Source of the DNA: Octopus sinensis
Taxonomy: Eukaryota
Length of the DNA: 9,489 nt
Direction: 5' to 3'
Assembly: GCF_006345805.1 (NCBI RefSeq)
Contig: NW_021827925.1
Span: forward strand, 1 to 9,489
The notes beneath the pieces are model-generated. The model worked only from the letters and a program-made list of their open reading frames with translations, was not told the origin of the DNA and did no database searches. Shown here in pieces: positions 376-9,489 of the stretch. The position numbers and the translations under genes were made by a program. Every line of letters starts with the position of its first letter. Within the stretch, counting starts at the first letter, position 1.

Positions 376-1710
376 CTAGCTTCTTGGGTTTGACTCCAGT
401 TTCAGCAGTGCGTCGACACAGCGTTGGTAAAATTCCAACAGAGCATCCTTGTTGTGAGAGTCTACCTTCGCCTGCGTTTTGGCCTGCTGAGTACCGTTCC
501 TTATTGGGCTGACGGGCCTCGGTTTCACAGCCTCGGCGACAGGGGCCTGCATGCTCTGCGCACCAACCTCAACGACTTGCGTCGTCTGGGTATGGGCGTC
601 CGCCACACACGGGGTTATTAGCGGTCCGTACTTTCCAGATAGGCGTGACCGGCTTAGCTTTTACCATTACCATGCGGGTTGGGTTAGGAGACCGAGGCAT
701 TGCTTCTGCGCGGGCGGCCCATTTAGCTGCTGTTGCAGCTTTGGCCGTCGGGCATCCACCATACGAAGCGAGGTGGCCGGGGCGGTCACAATTGATACAA
801 TGCCGACCGCAGGGCTCCACTAGACTTTGTTTGCTGCCTGGGCATTCCCTTCGGTCGTGGTCCTTGCCGCAGTATAAGCACCGGCTTTTTCTTGACAGTT
901 ACGGGACAGGTGTCCGAATCTCTGACAATGGAAACATCGGACGACAGGAGGTCTGAACCATTCACAGGTGATAAGGCAGAAACCAGCTGTGATTCCGGTG
1001 CGGATCAAAGAAGTAGCTTCAGCTCGTGAGTCAAGCGTCAGCTTAGCAACTGGGATGTTGAGACCATCTCGCGTGAATCGCTCGAGAACGAACACCGAAC
1101 TGAGGGTTTCCTTCAGGTGCAGCTCTAGGTCCCGATTGGAGATCCATCGCGGAATCCCCTTTAGGACTAGTGCTGACTTTTGCGGAGTAACTAAGGCAAG
1201 TTTATGGCCGCCTTCGCCAAACGGGTTCAATCTTGCAAGCTCAGCCGAGAATGCATCAGCATCTCCGGGGCTCCTGAACTCAAGAGTGAAGGAGCCTGAG
1301 CGTTGTAATGTAATCCGTGCTTTGGAGGCTGTTGGCGACTTGGATAGGAGGTTAAACCTCTTGATCTTTCCAAGTGCCGGGTTATTAATGCTCAGAGTGA
1401 ATGTGAGGCCTGAGCTGTTAAGGTCAGACCTCGGGGGTTCGGTGGATTCTTCAACTTTGGAGGGCTCTCCTTGAACCATCTGGACCGTCGGAGCACCTCC
1501 ACTTCGACATAGATTTCTTATTGCAGACAATTGTTCGGTGGAATCTTCTTCAACTTTGATGGAAACATGTTGAACCGTCTGATCCGTCAGAACACTCCCA
1601 CTTCGACATAGGTTTCTAATTGTAGACAATTGTTTCCTTGGAACTTTTGTTCTTTTTTGTCCTTCAGTGTTTGCTTTTGCGTTTTCTTTTGAGTTTTTCT
1701 TAGGTGCCAT
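376..1710 (-). CDS. ORF1 (Gag-like nucleic-acid chaperone) of element B, frameshifted; N-terminus carries histone-like segments
   Basis: Starts MAPKK at 1710. Joining track ORFs 820-1761, 569-820 and 376-606 across indels near 860 and 600 gives knuckles CFHCQRFGHLSRNC, CLYCGKDHDRREC and CINCDRPGHLASYGGC (CX2CX4HX4C / CX2CX3HX4C / CX2CX4HX6C). This spacing is typical of Jockey/R1/I-type ORF1. Confidence 0.88.
1441..1635 (-). repeat. In-frame tandem duplication (33 aa + 32 aa) in element B ORF1
   Basis: KQLSTIRNLCRSGSVLTDQTVQHVSIKVEEDST followed by EQLSAIRNLCRSGGAPTVQMVQGEPSKVEEST. Shared DNA blocks include CCACTTCGACATAG and GACAATTGTT. Confidence 0.9.
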
Positions 1711-1732: not shown

Positions 1733-1764
1733 TTGAAGTTTTGAAGTTTTGAAGTTTGCAAGTT
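1733..1764. repeat. 8-bp tandem repeat (TTGAAGTT)x3 plus one degenerate unit in the element B leader
   Basis: Direct reading: ttgaagtt ttgaagtt ttgaagtt tgcaagtt. Confidence 0.8.
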
Positions 1765-1780
1765 TTTCGGGGAAAAAAAA

Positions 1781-1866: not shown

Positions 1867-4497
1867 CTACACACACCACAGGTTAAGACTTACCGCCTTA
1901 CCTGCCTCCAGAATAATCTTCTCTATTCGGACCTCAGAGAGGCCTTTGAGAGATGATTCCTGGGCGTCGGAGAGCTCAGTCCGGAATCCTAAGCCATAGG
2001 CTAGCCTTATGGCTCGTCTTCTTACTTTTTTAAGCACGTCAACATGCTTATCCCTGTCCTCATAGAGGTACCAAGCGTGGACGCCATAGGTCAAGACGGG
2101 TAACACCATGGCGTTAAACACGCGGAACCAGGCACCTCTGCTCAAGCGGAAAGCACGCAACGCACCTAATCGCTGCATTGCACGCATTTTCGTACGTGCA
2201 ATGTGATCATCAAACTTACCGGACGGCTTAAAGAGCACGCCCAAATAAGTCATCCGATCAACTGCAGCGATTGCTGACCCGCTCAGCAATAACCTAGGAA
2301 CAAAATTAGTGTAACCCCTCGTCCTTTTACAGACTTTAAGGACACTGCACTTGTCCGCGCACATTCTCAGACCCCTACTCCCACACCAGTTTGCAAGTCC
2401 ATCCACAGCAACCTGAAGCCTACGACACGCACACTCCGGTTTCATTGAGTGATCCCAGAGGATAATGTCGTCTGCATAGATTACCATTTCAGTACGAGCA
2501 TTGACTGGCATAGGCGCAGTGGCCATAAACACATTGAATAGTGTCGGACTGAGCACAGAGCCCTGAGGGACCCCGCGAAGGACTGTTGCGACTTTAGAAA
2601 AGACCCCCTGATGCCGCACGACCTGCCTGCGAGATTCAAGAAACCCCGACAGCCAGCGCCTTAGACACGGAGAAACCCCACACGTGGCAAGGGAACTCCG
2701 GAGGCCGTCGTGCCACACCGAGTCGAAGGCCTTTTCAATGTCGAGACTAACTAAAATACCGCATTCCCTTTTCTGGAGGGCGTTCTTCATACCAGACGAC
2801 ACCTTGTGAAGGCAGTCCCCGCATGAGCGGCCCTCCTGAAGCCCCATTGGAACTCAGGGAGGGCGTCTGCAACCATCAGCTCCTCCAGGAGCCTTGGTGC
2901 ATAATTCTTTCTAGGATTTTAGATATCGCGGGGAGCAAGGAAATGGGCCTATATCCCCCGGGGACATCATGTGGCTTCCGGGCTTTCCGATAAGGATTAC
3001 CTCAGCCACTTTCCACCTGGAGGGAATCATCCCAAGTCGCAAGCTCCCGTTAAATAAAACCTTTAGTGCAGTGATTAACCGCGGCGGGGCCTTCTTAAAG
3101 ATGGCCATCGGGATCCGATCCAAACCCGCCGCGGTGTTCTTACTTCGGGAGATTGCTGCCAGAATCTCCGCTTCAGTAATTTCGCCTGCATCGTTCCTTG
3201 ATATGCCCAGCTGGCAGCGCTTGTCCCACGACAATATCTGCTGGACAGTATCAAAGGACGATGTCTCTACGAACTGACTTCCGTCAGTTCCCGAGATGCC
3301 ATTGAGATGGGCTGAAAGTATTTCAACCACCTCAACCGGGTCCGAAGCGAGGGTTCCATCAGAGCGTTTAAGGCGCACTGACTTAGCCCCCCTTCTCCCG
3401 ACAGGCTCTTCAACTGCTTCCAGAAGTCCGGAAAGCGAGGGTCCACCCTTCGGCAGGCCCTCTCCCACCGCGAACTTTCGAGTTCGCGGATTTCTCTTCG
3501 GATCTCCCTCTGAAGCCGGCTAATCCAGCCACGAAACCAAACACGGTTCTCCTCGTAAACGCATTTGTCCCGTAGTCTGGATAGCCGGCGCTTGAACCTA
3601 ATTTTATTTAAGATCCGGTGAGGGAGCGTGGAATGTGCCTGACCCTGCACTGAGTTTGTTTGAAATTATCTCGCATGTAATCAGTCAGGGCAGCATTGAT
3701 TCCATTATCAAGCGCCTCCAACTCACGTATGTTGGCGCAGGTATTCCCCACCAGAAGTGAGGGCAACCTGCTGGCCATGAAACTCTCCAGGTTAGCCCAG
3801 GAACCCACCCGGAGGTCAAAGTATCCTGGGACCCTTTGAGGAACTGGCTCACGGAGTTCGTGCAATAGAGGCAGATGGTCGCTCCCAATATCGGACAATA
3901 AAATAGTTTTACTAACCCAATTTAGAAGACCGGGACTGACCAGAGCAAGCCCTAGCCAGTCACGTCCTCCCCTCGCGTCGACGTGGTTTGGCTCGCTCGA
4001 AGTCCGGATTTCCAGCCCGAGGTCTTCAACCAGCGTCTTCAGAGCCAAACCATGCGAGTTGGTTACCCTGAAACCAAGATCTTGATGCTTGGCATTCAGG
4101 TCCCCAACAACCATGGCCTTCGGATGCTTTTCAAAGAACTCCGTACGTGCCAGGAGCACGCCGTAAAGTTCTTCGAGTACATCCCACCTAGGTAAAATGT
4201 TAACTCGCCTATGCGAATTCTCACTTGGAGGAATTTCACACAGCTACATGAACATATACCTGGACTCTGCAAGGCAAGGTAGGGCTTGTAGAAGAGGCTA
4301 GTTCCTGTGCCACATATTGACCCCTGTTTCCAGGGTATGTGACGACAGTTGTAGCCATCAACTACGTACGGACCCCCCTTTACCTTCGTTTCGTTGACCA
4401 CCAGAATGTCCGCACTCGTGGTGGCCAACATCCTCTGAACGGCGTCCCTTTTTCCTTCCAAGGAACGCGCGTTCACCGATATGATGTTGAGCATCAT
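1867..4497 (-). CDS. ORF2 of element A1: APE endonuclease plus reverse transcriptase, broken by several single-base indels
   Basis: APE motifs SVNARS, VVNETK, VVGDLNAKH and SDHLPL. RT motifs AGLDRIP, WKVAEVILIGKP, (Y)RPISLLPAISKILE, QWGFR, LDIEKAFDSVWH, GVPQGSVLSPTLF, YADD (2478-2467) and YLGV. No RNase H domain was recognised. Confidence 0.95.
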
Positions 4498-6315
4498 ATC
4501 GGTTCTTCGCCAAGGATCTTCTTGGCCTCGGCAACGTTGCAGTGTAGCATTTCCTCTACACTGCAATTCATCTCCCTACAAAATTTTAATAGGGAAACGC
4601 ATAATTGCACCGCAGGACTAATACTGTCCTGCGGTACACGCTCGCCAGGGGCTGAGTGCAATGGCATCTCCACGTATGGAGGACGCTTTTCAGCCCCAGG
4701 TTGTGCGGACGGCGCCGCCGTTAGCCGCCTCAGAAGGCATTGCCGGCTTAGGCAACCAAGCGGACTCGGAAGCTTTCACCTGCTTTGCCAACTTTGTCGG
4801 CGAAGGCTGCACCGACCCACACGTAGCATGGCTCACAGGTTCCACTGTCTTCGCCACCCAAACGGATTTGGAAGGTTTGGCCAGTATCGCCTGCTTGCCA
4901 GGTTTTGGCGCAGGGCGCGCGACGCGACGCGGGCGACTTACTGTTGGGATTACATCCCCACCTACCTTCGGGTTGCCTCCTTGAACTTGGGCAACCTCTG
5001 AAGTTGGCAGTGTGTCCCAACTTACCACAGTTGACACCACTGCCTCTCCTTGGATGGTGAGGGGCACGTCTTGCGACCATGCTCCCCACCGCAAATAAGG
5101 CACTTCGCCTTATCCGGGCACTTTGTGGAGATGTGCCCGAACCCCTGACACCGAAAGCATTGGGTGGCTTTCGGGCGGGGCCAGGCAGCTCTCATCCTAA
5201 TGTAGCCGATCCTGGTACCAAGAAGTACCAGGCGCTCAGCTTCTGCAGGAGATCCCAGTGTAATCTCCACCACTTCAAGAGGGCGATTACCCTGCTTGAA
5301 GCGTGCAATGGCAGAGCAACTGGGGTACTCCTGCTGCAGGTGACCTAGGAGGTCATTATCCTCGAAGTCCCGAGGAACCCCGAGGAGGAGGACACTTACC
5401 TTACTTACCTTACGTTCGATCCTGACAAGGCGATGCATGCCAGGACCGAACGGATTTGACTTCTCCAGCTCCCCTTTGAAGCTGGAGAAGTCATCCTCCT
5501 TCTCCCACCCAAGCAGGAATTGGGTAGGCTCCCTCTTCAGGACTCTGTACAGCTTTGAAGGCTGGATAGAGTCTAACGTACCTAAGATCTTTATGACCGA
5601 GGCCTTCCCACTTGTAGGGAGGACCTCAAGTCGTGCCACAGCACCGAAGGTAATTCTGCCCCCGGCGCCAGTGGTCTTCTTTGGGTGTGCATCCACCTGA
5701 TCGGACACACACCCAGTACCTAAAAACATGGGGGGTTGGACGGCCAGCCGCACGTTTGGGTTTCCCCACCGTGTACCAACCGTCCTCAAGGGCAACCTTA
5801 TTTCCTGCCGTACCCACCGGGACGGCCTCAGGAGACGACACCCTGTTGGCATTAATTGACTTACCTAGGCTGGGTTTGGTACCACTAGACAAACCGCAAA
5901 CACGTGGCGAACCAGCATGCTGTGCGGTTGTGGTGGATACCAAACGATCAGAACCAGTTGCACCTGCAGCTCCCCCGACACCAGCCATAGGGGGAGCAGA
6001 GGAAGAAGTGTCTCCAGTGAGTGCTGAACCCACCTGGGAGGGTCCAGGCTTCGACTTCTCCTTCCTGCTTTCGCCTAGAAAATTAAAGACACCACTAGAA
6101 TAGCCGGAAGCGCGTGGCGGTGAACCACGGCTCCGGCAATTCATCGTAGTGGCACACTGAACCGTCTTGTCCTTCTGGGAGAGCGAGGCGGGAACACCTC
6201 CACTTCTGCATAGTCTTCTTAGTGCAGACAGCTTGCGAGCAGATTTTGCAGACAACTGTTTCCTTGGTACTTTTGCACCAGTAGATTTTCGAGCCGTTTG
6301 TTTTGTTCTAGCCAT
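4494..6315 (-). CDS. ORF1 (Gag-like) of element A1 with an N-terminal histone H3 tail; frameshifted
   Basis: Starts [28 protein letters not shown]. Knuckles are [27 protein letters not shown] and [16 protein letters not shown]. The manually read C-terminus ...[41 protein letters not shown] ends at TGA 4496-4494. Confidence 0.88.
6232..6315 (-). other. H3: Histone H3 N-terminal tail (residues 1-27) in frame with ORF1
   Basis: 22/27 identical to canonical [27 protein letters not shown]. No H3 histone fold follows. Confidence 0.95.
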
Positions 6316-6321
6316 ATTTTA

Positions 6322-6519
6322 TTATTTCCCGGTCAAAAGAATAGCTTGCGTGTTGCCGCGCATGATTGTACCAGAGATCCTCTGTCTTAGCCAAGAAGAT
6401 TCGCTTGCATCCATGTTTCTCCGAGCGATAAGGAGGCAGACGTGTTTTAAGAACTTGGATGTTTGCGGGACAAAGGCTGCGGAGATCTCGAATGCCAAAG
6501 GGACAATTACTAGTTGCAT
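6322..6519 (-). other. 65-aa ORF of unknown status in the spacer between the H2B fragment and the H3-tail ATG
   Basis: Open and identical in both copies, ATG-initiated, and stops 6 nt before ORF1. It has only a weak resemblance to the H3 histone fold. Confidence 0.25.
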
Positions 6520-6578
6520 TTGGATTGTTGAAATAGTTATTTAAAGAACAAATAAATAAAACAATTATTTTTAAAGTG

Positions 6579-6795
6579 TTATTTGTATTCTGTACTTAGT
6601 AACTGCCTTTGCACCCTCTGTATAGCATGTTTTGTTAATTCACCGGGAAGAATCAGACGAACTGCAGTCTGTATTTCACGTGAGGTAATGGTAGCCTTCG
6701 AATTCTGATAGACTAGATTTGATGCCTCGGTTTTTATTTTGTCATAAACATCAAATGTGAAACTGTCCATAGCCATCATAGCCTTCTTTGGAAAT
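6579..6795 (-). pseudogene. H2B: 5'-truncated histone H2B (C-terminal half), divergent
   Basis: IS(KK)[49 protein letters not shown] matches H2B helices 2-3. The N-terminal half is absent, and homology starts right at the A-tail of the upstream element. Confidence 0.92.
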
Positions 6796-6797
6796 TT

Positions 6798-6803
6798 TTT
6801 ATT
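6798..6803 (-). terminator. AATAAA poly(A)-signal-like 3' end of unit A2
   Basis: Minus strand reads ...TTATTAAATAAAAAA|TTTCC, joined directly to H2B sequence. Confidence 0.55.
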
Positions 6804-6844
6804 TAATAATTAATTAGAGAGGCTGTTAGTGAGGTAACATAAGG

Positions 6845-6874
6845 AGACCTTCGGCATTCCTGCCTTTTCGGTCC
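6845..6874 (-). promoter_or_regulatory. Putative 3' stem-loop of unit A2
   Basis: GGAC-CGAAAA-GGCA-GGAA-TGCC-GAAG-GTCT has the same fold as 1818-1847 with a different GNRA loop. Confidence 0.5.
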
Positions 6875-6915
6875 AGCACACACGCTCGCCTCTCTACACA
6901 ACCACAGGTTAGGAC

Positions 6916-7203
6916 TTACCGTCTTACCTGCCACCCAGTCATTATCTTCTCTAGGACCTCAGGGAGGCCTTTGAGGGACAATTCCTGGGCGTTGGAGAGC
7001 TCATCACGCCATCCTAAGCCATAGGCTAGCCGGATGGCTCGTCTTCTTACTTTCTTAAGCGCGTCAACGTGCTTTTCCCTGTCCTCGCAGAAGTGCCAAG
7101 CGTGCACGCCATAGGTTAACACGGGTAACACCATGGCGTTGAACACAGGGAACCAGGCACCTCTCCTCAAGTGGAAAGCACGCAACGCGCCTAATCGCTG
7201 CAT
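6916..7203 (-). pseudogene. C-terminal (post-RT) remnant of ORF2 from a sister subfamily
   Basis: [18 protein letters not shown]... aligns to the A1 ORF2 end with 13 differences in 83 aa and many synonymous changes. Confidence 0.9.
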
Positions 7204-9013
7204 CGTTCTTCGCCAAGGATCTTCTTGGCCTCGGCAACGTTGCAGTGTAGCATTTCCTCTACACTGCAATTCATCTCCCTACAAAATTTTAATAGGGAAA
7301 CGCATAATTGCACCGCAGGACTAATACTGTCCTGCGGTACACGCTCGCCAGGGGTGAGTGCAATGGCATCTCCACGTATGGAGGACGCCTTTTCAGCCCC
7401 AGGTTGTGCCGGACGGCGCCGCCGTTAGCCGCCTCAGAAGGCATTGCCGGCTTAGGCAACCAAGCGGACTCGGAAGCTTTCACCTGCTTTGCCAACTTTG
7501 TCGGCGAAGGCTGCACCGACCCACACGTAGCATGGCTCACAGGTTCCACTGTCTTCGCCACCCAAACGGATTGGAAGGTTTGGCCAGTATCGCCTGCTTG
7601 CCAGGTTTTGGCGCAGGGCGCGCGACGCGACGCGGGCGACTTACTGTTGGGATTACATCCCCACCTACCTTCGGGTTGCCTCCTTGAACTTGGGGCAACC
7701 TCTGAAGTTGGCAGTGTGTCCCAACTTACCACAGTTGACACACTGCCTCTCCTTGGATGGTGAGGGGCACGTCTTGCGACCATGCTCCCCACCGCAAATA
7801 AGGCACTTCGCCTTATCCGGGCACTTTGTGGAGATGTGCCCGAACCCCTGACACCGAAAGCATTGGGTGGCTTTCGGGCGGGGCCAGGCAGCTCTCATCC
7901 TAATGTAGCCGATCCTGGTACCAAGAAGTACCAGGCGCTCAGCTTCTGCAGGAGATCCCAGTGTAATCTCCACCACTTCAAGAGGGCGATTACCCTGCTT
8001 GAAGCGTGCAATGGCAGAGGCACTGGGGTACTCCTGCTGCAGATGACCTAGGAGGTCATTATCCTCGAAGTCCCGAGGAACCCCGAGGAGGAGGACACTT
8101 ACCTTACTTACCTTACGTTCGATCCTGACAAGGCGATGCATGCCAGGACCGAACGGATTTGACTTCTCCAGCTCCCCTTTGAAGTTGGAGAAGTCATCCT
8201 CCTTCTCCCACCCAAGCAGGAATTGGGTGGGCTCCCTCTTCAGGACTCTATACAGCTTTGAAGGCTGGATAGAGTCTAACGTACCTAAGATCTTTATGAC
8301 CGAGGCCTTCCCACTTGTAGGGAGGACCTCAAGTCGTGCCACAGCACCGAAGGTAATTCTGCCCCCGGCGCCAGTGGTCTTCTTTGGTGGTGCATCCGCC
8401 TGATCGGACACACACCCAGTACCAAAACATTAGGGGGGGTTGGACGGCCAGCCGCACGTTTGGGTTTCCCCACCGTGTACCAACCGTCCTCTAGGGCAAC
8501 CTTATTTTCTGCCGTACCCACCGGGACGGCCTCAGGAGACGACACCCTGTTGGCATTAATTGACTTACCTAGGCTGAGTTTGGTACCACTAGACAAACCG
8601 CAAACACGTGGCGAACCAGCATGCTGTGCGGTTGTGGTGGATACCAAACGATCAGAACCAGTTGCACCTGCAGCTCCCCCGACACCAGCCATAGGGGGAG
8701 CAGAGGAAGAAGTGTCTCCAGTGAGTGCTGAACCCACCTGGGAGGGTCCAGGCTTCGACCTCCTGCTTTGACCTAAAGAATTAAAAACACCACTAGAATA
8801 GCCGGAAGCGCGTGGCGGTGAACCACGGCTCCGGCAATTCATCGTAGTGGCACACTGAACCGTCTTGTCCTTCTGGGAGAGCGAGGCGGGAACACCTCCA
8901 CTTCTGCATAGTCTTCTTAGTGCAGACAGCTTGCGAGCAGATTTTGCAGACAACTGTTTCCTTGGTACTTTTGCACCAGTAGATTTTCGAGCCGTTTGTT
9001 TTGTTCTAGCCAT
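7191..9013 (-). CDS. ORF1 (Gag-like) of unit A2 with an N-terminal histone H3 tail; frameshifted
   Basis: Same protein as 4494-6315, with indels at different positions. It ends ...[11 protein letters not shown] across the deletion junction. Confidence 0.88.
8930..9013 (-). other. H3: Histone H3 N-terminal tail (residues 1-27) in frame with ORF1, second copy
   Basis: Identical translation to 6232-6315. Confidence 0.95.
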
Positions 9014-9019
9014 ATTTTA

Positions 9020-9217
9020 TTATTTCCCGGTCAAAAGAATAGCTTGCGTGTTGCCGCGCATGATTGTACCAGAGATCCTCTGTCTTAGCCAAGAAGATTC
9101 GCTTGCATCCATGTTTCTCCGAGCGATAAGGAGGCAGACGTGTTTTAAGAACTTGGATGTTTGCGGGACAAAGGCTGCGGAGATCTCGAATGCCAAAGGG
9201 ACAATTACTAGTTGCAT
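9020..9217 (-). other. Second copy of the 65-aa spacer ORF
   Basis: Identical translation to 6322-6519. Confidence 0.25.
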
Positions 9218-9279
9218 TTGGATTGTTGAAATAGTTATTTAAAGAACAAATAAATAAAAAAACAATTATTTTTAAAGTG

Positions 9280-9489
9280 TTATTTGGTATTCGTGTACTT
9301 AGTAACTGCCTTTGCACCCTCTGTAATAGCATGTTTTGCCAATTCACCGGAAGAATCAGACGAACTGCAGTCTGTATTTCACGTGAGGTAATGGTAGCCT
9401 TCGAATTCTGATAGACTAGATTTGATGCCTCGGTTTTTATTTTGTCATAAACATCAAATGTAAAACTGTCCATAGCCATCATAGCCTTC
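9280..9489 (-). pseudogene. H2B: Histone H2B C-terminal half, second copy (cut by window edge)
   Basis: After one missing base it reads ...LILP(G)[21 protein letters not shown], a canonical-like H2B C-terminus with TAA at 9282-9280. Confidence 0.92.

Follow-up and report, generated by a model that had tools for sequence, protein, structure and literature searches.

Exchange and renewal of the N-terminal region is an established trait of ORF1 proteins in LINEs, and imitation of short motifs from histones is an established trait of viruses. In mammalian L1 families, the 5′ UTR and the ORF1 N-terminal region have been replaced or recombined, and chimeric retrocopies are formed via template switching by the reverse transcriptase (RT).

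Viral histone mimicry involves short motifs of the ARSK/ARKS type, with influenza NS1 and coronavirus ORF8 as examples (PMC11738798). On the host side, Hat2p and RbAp46/48 bind residues 1-12 of H3 atop the WD40 ring and helix 1 of H4 (residues 29-45) in a side groove, where the contacts of Hat2p to H4 are made with Arg35, Arg39, and Arg40 (PMC4052767). The groove of RbAp46/48 is also occupied by imitations of H4 helix 1, which are found in MTA1 (through its KRAARR motif) and in Su(z)12 (PMC4139204).

No report of a retrotransposon protein whose N-terminus is an extended histone-tail copy was found in the literature, for which our coverage is incomplete. Here we describe a 9,489-nucleotide stretch of Octopus sinensis DNA (the window) that holds LINE-like elements of two families, A and B, and compare the histone-like sequences at the start of their first open reading frames.

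Organization of the LINE elements

All features of interest in the window lie on the minus strand, to which every coordinate below refers. The LINE-like elements are arrayed head-to-tail and both window ends fall inside elements. In the direction of transcription these are a copy of family A with an internal deletion, termed A′ (9489-7205), a 3′ fragment from a related subfamily (88%; 7204 to about 6796), then a long family A copy (about 6795 to about 1787), and the 5′ part only of an element of family B (about 1786-1). The elements adjoin without intervening DNA, meeting near 7204/7205 and at about 6796 and 1787 on the minus strand. At 7204/7205, the ORF2 start of A′ is fused to the RT C-terminus with an ATG microhomology, and the 5′ part of A′ is 98-99% identical to A, while the 3′ part is only 88% identical. 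Together, the abutting elements and the mosaic structure of A′ suggest RT template jumping or tandem amplification over independent random insertions.

The overall difference between A and A′ is only about 2% and consists mostly of 1-nt indels in homopolymers, so some of the ORF frameshifts are possible long-read assembly errors. Frameshifts are found in both the A and the B copies, and several frames are broken in the window. When 4490-6790 is aligned with 7195-9489 (A with A′), 61 alignment columns differ, and none of these lies between 6088 and 6562.

Family A ORF2 matches Pfam Exo_endo_phos_2 (1.5e-9), followed by RVT_1 (3.6e-27). Pfam zf-CCHC is matched in both ORF1s, with the B match at 20.7 bits against a cut-off of 20.8, and three CCHC knuckles can be read in each ORF1 (A and B) after an RRM-like region. 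The sole named relative of A ORF1 is a moth protein, “Nucleic-acid-binding protein from transposon X-element”, at 28% identity. Because of the zinc knuckles and this relative, ORF1 was assigned to the Jockey/X-element type (type II). As judged by their domains, the elements are APE-type non-LTR retrotransposons (LINEs) with a type II ORF1.

The 3′ UTRs at 1775-1875 and 6796-6900 (minus strand) share one predicted fold, a GGCA-GNRA-UGCC hairpin with the loops GCGA and GGAA. The hairpin sits in a longer stem with compensatory changes (AGGGAGG/CUCCCUU versus AGAGAGGC/GCCUCUCU), with z-scores of -1.7 and -3.4. This common predicted hairpin probably serves as the stem-loop that the RT of this LINE family recognizes.

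The 5′ part of family B

The 5′ leader of family B (1711-1786) follows directly after the 3′ end of A, whose similarity to the other 3′ fragment in the window stops at ...AATAAA. An 8-nt unit resembling CTTCAAAA is repeated about four times within this 5′ UTR (1733-1766, minus strand). The ATG of ORF1 is at 1710, and codons 1-21 encode a lysine-rich leader, MAPKKNSKENAKANTEGQKRT (1648-1710), which by eye looks like a bipartite NLS. The leader is followed by the octapeptide KVPRKQLS (1624-1647) and two tandem units of 33 codons each. Unit 1 comprises KQLSTIRNLCRSGSV and a linker (1537-1635), with its start overlapping the end of the octapeptide, and unit 2 comprises EQLSAIRNLCRSGGA and a linker (1438-1536).

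The core of B ORF1 contains the RRM-like region and the first CCHC knuckle (823-1437; zf-CCHC residues 258-273). Knuckles two and three are in the remaining part of ORF1, which is read in another frame (569-905), and the frameshift between the two parts is either genuine to the copy or an assembly error. An AlphaFold model of B ORF1 was too poor for use (pLDDT 42). The start of ORF2, the N-terminus of an APE-type endonuclease (1-341), is cut by the window edge; its first 113 amino acids have no Pfam match, and by eye its MTTPLKIIAVNARS... parallels the MMLNIISVNARS... of A.

Short tandem repeats are found at 1645-1697 (minus strand), one of 12 nt encoding SKEN/AKAN and one of 10 nt (GGACAAAA/AGAACAAAA). 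Since the leader holds these 12-nt and 10-nt repeats, part of the N-terminal extension of B has grown by replication slippage.

A first-pass annotation of this DNA had described B as a second, far-diverged LINE family, with an ORF1 that beyond its N-terminus was roughly one-third identical to that of A by eye. Alignment bears this out on both counts: 61 of 190 residues in the ORF1 core are identical between A and B (32%), and the longest identical run is 4 residues.

A histone-like module shared by two families

ORF1 of family A begins with a methionine followed by residues 1-27 of histone H3 (6232-6315), of which 22/27 are identical to canonical H3. Directly after H3(1-27) is a single copy of a motif that is similar to H4 residues 33-43 (6193-6231). 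The same H3(1-27) and motif are present in A′ (8891-9013), with zero differences from A over the stretch. The first 28 residues of A match H3 chains in the PDB (residues 1-30) with an E-value of 2.5e-7, a score reached in 0/2000 shuffles, and the PDB H3 matches to A are confined to residues 1-31. No match to the Pfam Histone domain was found in ORF1 of A or B and, with no histone fold present, the ORF1 proteins are not histones.

Further upstream, 263 nt from A ORF1, is the C-terminal half of an H2B (6579-6795; Pfam Histone, E = 4.5e-6), and it recurs on the same strand at the same distance from A′ ORF1 (about 9277-9489, minus strand). Within this piece one block of 13 residues is intact and the rest is about 58% identical by eye to a standard H2B. 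Neither a histone 3′ stem-loop nor any other Rfam family was found near the H2B fragment. The 5′ end of family A therefore carries three histone-like pieces: the C-terminal half of H2B, H3(1-27), and the H4-like motif; of these, the H2B piece may be part of either the element or a target site. An origin of the H3 start of A from site-specific insertion into an H3 gene was ruled out, as the rest of H3 follows neither of the 3′ ends in the window; this origin is also countered by B, where the module is present without any histone-gene context.

In family B, the part of this sequence that can be recognized begins with KVPRKQLS. This octapeptide is encoded three times in the window (0 expected from 200 shuffles), at 1647-1624 in B, at 6273-6250 in A (codons 15-22), and at 8971-8948 in A′, all on the minus strand. 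The first-pass annotation had reported it to be identical to residues 14-21 of the H3 tail of A, with synonymous differences only, and this was confirmed: 22 of 24 bases agree between B and A, and the two codon differences, gta/gtt and cag/caa, are both synonymous. The duplicated unit that had been placed after the octapeptide is likewise present. B has a tandem period of 99 nt, in which 1634-1546 is 80% identical to 1535-1447, and the two diverged 33-codon copies each open with QLSxIRNLCRSG. A degenerate pattern for the DNA encoding the motif has 4 matches (two in B and one each in A and A′) and no others, with 0 expected. The motif comprises 13 residues common to A and B, and A has the one copy.

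Within the window, A and B carry these sequences 4.6 kb apart and in the same orientation. Against an identity of 32% between the ORF1 cores, with no identical run longer than 4 residues, the shared 8-mer and 13-mer are not due to chance, and the sequence comparison shows the modules of A and B to be homologous. The B N-terminus is, as originally described, a rearranged version of the A module, with H3 residues 14-21 followed by the LCRSGG motif in duplicate. Relative to A, the B tract differs by about 22% in the motif and is without H3 residues 1-13 and 22-27. The leader of B has no significant nucleotide similarity to codons 1-13 of A (p = 0.27). The “RTK” that stands ahead of the B octapeptide was considered as a possible remnant of H3 residues 2-4, left by a deletion from K4 to K14, but we rate this as no more than a possibility, as the 9-nt match sits in the 10-nt slippage repeat and the nucleotides upstream show no significant similarity to A.

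Both families have Val at position 15 and Ser at position 21 of the H3 piece, unlike the H3 sequences in the PDB, which argues for one common origin of the A and B pieces. The alternative is that template switching at the 5′ end gave each family its own pieces, taken independently from host histone mRNAs or from a host gene for an H3-like variant. The three histone-like pieces at the 5′ end of A would fit such a process, as they suggest repeated jumps onto histone templates. However, separate captures would need to have produced V15/S21 in B as in A, joined to the LCRSGG motif at the same point, and B has only 8 residues of H3. We therefore consider independent capture quite unlikely.

Likeness of the module to histones

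By itself, the N-terminal 95 amino acids of B have no match to a PDB histone at E<=10. The octapeptide of B is 6/8 identical to standard H3 and, since B alone gives no histone match, the link between B and H3 runs through A.

The first-pass annotation had also called the motif within the duplicated unit H4-like, and the likeness reached a suggestive level in only some of the copies. The motif of A is identical to H4 at 8/11 positions, with an equal or better score in 0/2000 shuffles for H4 and in 6/2000 when any core histone is allowed (p about 0.003). For unit 2 of B, the corresponding count against H4 is 8/2000 (p 0.004-0.035), while the likeness of unit 1 is not significant by the same shuffles. 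A phmmer search of the PDB returned no H4 match from the N-termini of A or B. Together, these comparisons are suggestive of a resemblance to helix 1 and loop 1 of H4 (AIRRLARRGGV).

The MAPKK start of B (residues 1-22) had been compared to the tails of H2B. Against H2B tails of three species, this likeness gives p-values of 0.003-0.007 for human and 0.018 for yeast and is not significant for Drosophila, so the outcome varies with the H2B tail chosen.

The module is younger than the ORF1 core

For the H3 piece and the motif together, pS between A and B is 0.28-0.39 (dS 0.34-0.56), compared to a saturated pS of 0.76 between the ORF1 cores of the same two elements. The core pS between B and its closest O. 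sinensis relative is 0.67. If the module changed at the rate of the core, synonymous changes as few as these would arise with a probability of 2e-5 to 9e-4, in a test that uses a single B copy and about 18 synonymous sites. Codon usage at identical residues shows the same difference, where 16/22 codons are the same in the module versus 24/60 in the core (p 0.002-0.008). The synonymous comparison of module and core that had been proposed in the first-pass annotation thus places the module far below the saturated core, and by this measure the elements are far older than the module they carry. Part of the low divergence at synonymous sites may stem from constraint at the RNA or DNA level.

The closest relatives of B that were found are three O. 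sinensis proteins, which are up to 64% identical and have unrelated N-termini; these come from automated gene prediction, and truncation of the models is possible. For the closest of them, LOC115231492, the core is 64% identical to B in amino acids and 71% in nucleotides, while the first 42 residues are unrelated. The DNA similarity to LOC115231492 stops at window position 1427, just 3′ of the last codon of the module (1438), so the module edge and the boundary of homology coincide, as in a recombinant or mosaic LINE 5′ module. LOC115231492 (VCDQ01012173.1, 10001-10831) is an isolated ORF1 fragment, annotated as a gene, that ends inside the second zinc knuckle, without an ORF2 behind it.

A profile search with ORF1 against 1.84 billion representative proteins returned 6581 relatives at E<=1e-3, and three of the closest matches are O. 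sinensis proteins. The sequence ARTK, RKQL in an N-terminal position, and the LCRSG motif are all absent from the best 150 of these 6581. One N-terminus, NLSSIKACSKV of P0001, was considered as a decayed motif and rejected, as 1809/5000 shuffles matched equally well (not significant). A word-indexed protein search returned one O. sinensis protein for B ORF1 and nothing for the start of the B endonuclease, an exact look-up of six ORFs from the window found none of them on record, and DNA patterns run against metagenomic, viral, and prokaryotic sequences had no match. These searches yielded no independent copy of A or B.

Because the module is younger than the cores and is absent from the nearest relatives, it is best placed as having entered A and B after their divergence. 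The histone segments had been proposed in the first-pass annotation to be either old and conserved, or repeatedly recaptured or swapped between families. The first option, in which the common ancestor of A and B already had the module and strong selection has since kept it in both, agrees with the equivalent position of the module in the two families, at the N-terminal end of ORF1, and with the conservation of its amino acids. Vertical inheritance would not, however, leave the synonymous sites of the module unsaturated next to those of the core, and it is difficult to reconcile with unrelated N-termini in relatives of B at 64% core identity or with a module present in 0 of the best 150 ORF1 relatives. 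We regard it as very improbable. Swapping between families fits the combination of low divergence in the module and a saturated core.

Constraint on the encoded peptide

Between A and B, changes in the module are biased to synonymous sites, with a dN/dS of about 0.2 (p 0.02-0.06). The two tandem units of B differ from each other with a pS of 0.28, and nonsynonymous change is concentrated in the linker (pN of 0.38, versus 0.09 in the motif; Fisher p = 0.007), from which it follows that the duplication in B is old and that the motif is constrained. These patterns, although weak, suggest that selection acts on the protein encoded by the module.

It could instead be that the conserved stretch is a signal at the nucleic acid level, such as an internal promoter or an element for translation or packaging, with the peptide as a passenger. 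LINEs often have internal promoters at their 5′ ends, and the codon identity within the module is unusually high. A nucleic acid signal would not be expected to concentrate its differences at synonymous positions (dN/dS of about 0.2), nor to let the third positions of the two B units drift while the amino acids of the motif are kept, and there is no Rfam match or notable structure at the module. This explanation, too, has a very low probability in our view.

The first-pass annotation had viewed the histone segments as a feature of the element lineage rather than an accident of the locus. The purifying signal in the module and the old duplication with its constrained motif lend this view indirect support, and the module is found in none of the best 150 ORF1 relatives. 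An accident could have taken the form of gene conversion between the neighboring A and B elements, or of misassembly, so that the module would not be a property of family B. The setting would allow for this, since A and B are adjacent and head-to-tail, only one copy of B was found, and the assembly contains many 1-nt indels. However, the B tract is an imperfect copy of A, with differences at 2/24 positions in the octapeptide and about 22% of the motif, and the codons that flank the octapeptide in A, for H3 residues 1-13 and 22-27, are missing from B. Time since the exchange is also indicated by the duplicated motif unit, with its pS of 0.28 between units, and by later changes that are biased to synonymous sites; the difference of A from A′ is, by comparison, only about 2%. 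The pattern suggests evolution within an active lineage, with selection on the peptide, and not a fresh local conversion; we judge an accident of the locus to be unlikely, though somewhat less so than independent capture.

Proposed history of the module

Our preferred reading, to which we give a probability of about 0.6, is that the module was exchanged between families A and B, or reached them from a common third element, was then rearranged, and acts at the protein level. In B, an ordinary ORF1 core, with an RRM-like region and zinc knuckles, is preceded by a modular N-terminal extension that spans codons 1-94 and consists of the lysine-rich leader, the A-form of H3 residues 14-21, and two 33-residue units that open with QLSxIRNLCRSG(G). 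The exchange between A and B, or the transfer from the shared third source, would postdate the divergence of the cores by a long time and may have occurred via recombination or via template switching by the RT. Template switching would have a precedent within the window in the A′ junction at 7204/7205 and the three head-to-tail elements. In B, the module would then have been rearranged, with loss of H3 residues 1-13 and 22-27, gain of a new leader, and duplication of the motif unit.

As for function, the module may be a basic, histone-imitating tag that takes the ORF1 protein or its RNP to the nucleus or to histone-handling machinery. Any role of the full tail in A may not apply to B, because B lacks H3 residues 1-13. 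The presence of the module in a second family with a core only 32% identical, its younger age, and its signs of purifying selection together argue for a tag that benefits the elements and passes from one to another. Were other copies to confirm it, the module would offer a concrete means of testing how the particles of LINEs other than L1 gain access to chromatin or escape silencing by chromatin, as well as a natural case of a transposon recruiting host histone sequence.

Comparison with known systems

The RRM-like region followed by three CCHC knuckles in A and B is shared with the type II ORF1s of LINEs such as Jockey, I, and X-element, while the histone-like N-terminus sets A and B apart, as it is found in 0 of the best 150 relatives. 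As in viral histone mimicry, a selfish element encodes H3-tail sequence within a non-histone protein. The viral mimics are 4-6 residues in length, whereas family A has 27 residues that run from the initiator methionine; family B also differs from the viral cases, having only H3 residues 14-21 without ARKS or ARTK at a free N-terminus.

A comparison can also be made with the ligands of RbAp46/48. The sequence A[IL]R[RN]LCRSGG keeps the equivalents of I34, R35, L37, and R39 of H4 in all copies of the motif in the window, and family A additionally has H3 residues 1-12, the other ligand of the same chaperone. Unlike H4 helix 1, the motif has lost the equivalents of R36 and R40, and the likeness, with p about 0.003, covers no more than some 11 residues and is below detection by phmmer. 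From this analogy, the N-termini of A and B could be working imitations of newly made H3-H4 that dock onto WD40 chaperones of the RbAp46/48 or Hat2p type, a proposal that we consider unlikely as it stands. If true, A would present both chaperone ligands, while B would keep and duplicate the H4-like helix together with the basic patch of H3 14-21. The LINE RNP could then ride the import and deposition of histones (HAT1, CAF-1) or occupy subunits of NuRD and PRC2, which would provide entry into the nucleus in S phase and access to replicating chromatin, or would blunt silencing. The benefit would be large enough for unrelated LINE families to trade the tag.

The mosaic 5′ ends of LINEs offer the remaining parallel. 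In contrast to those of L1, the module in A and B is host histone coding sequence (the H3 tail and possibly H4 helix 1) rather than a promoter or coiled coil, and the elements that carry it are Jockey/X-element-like LINEs with a type II ORF1. As in mosaic LINE 5′ ends, A and B have a young, exchangeable N-terminal module that is sharply bounded from an old core.
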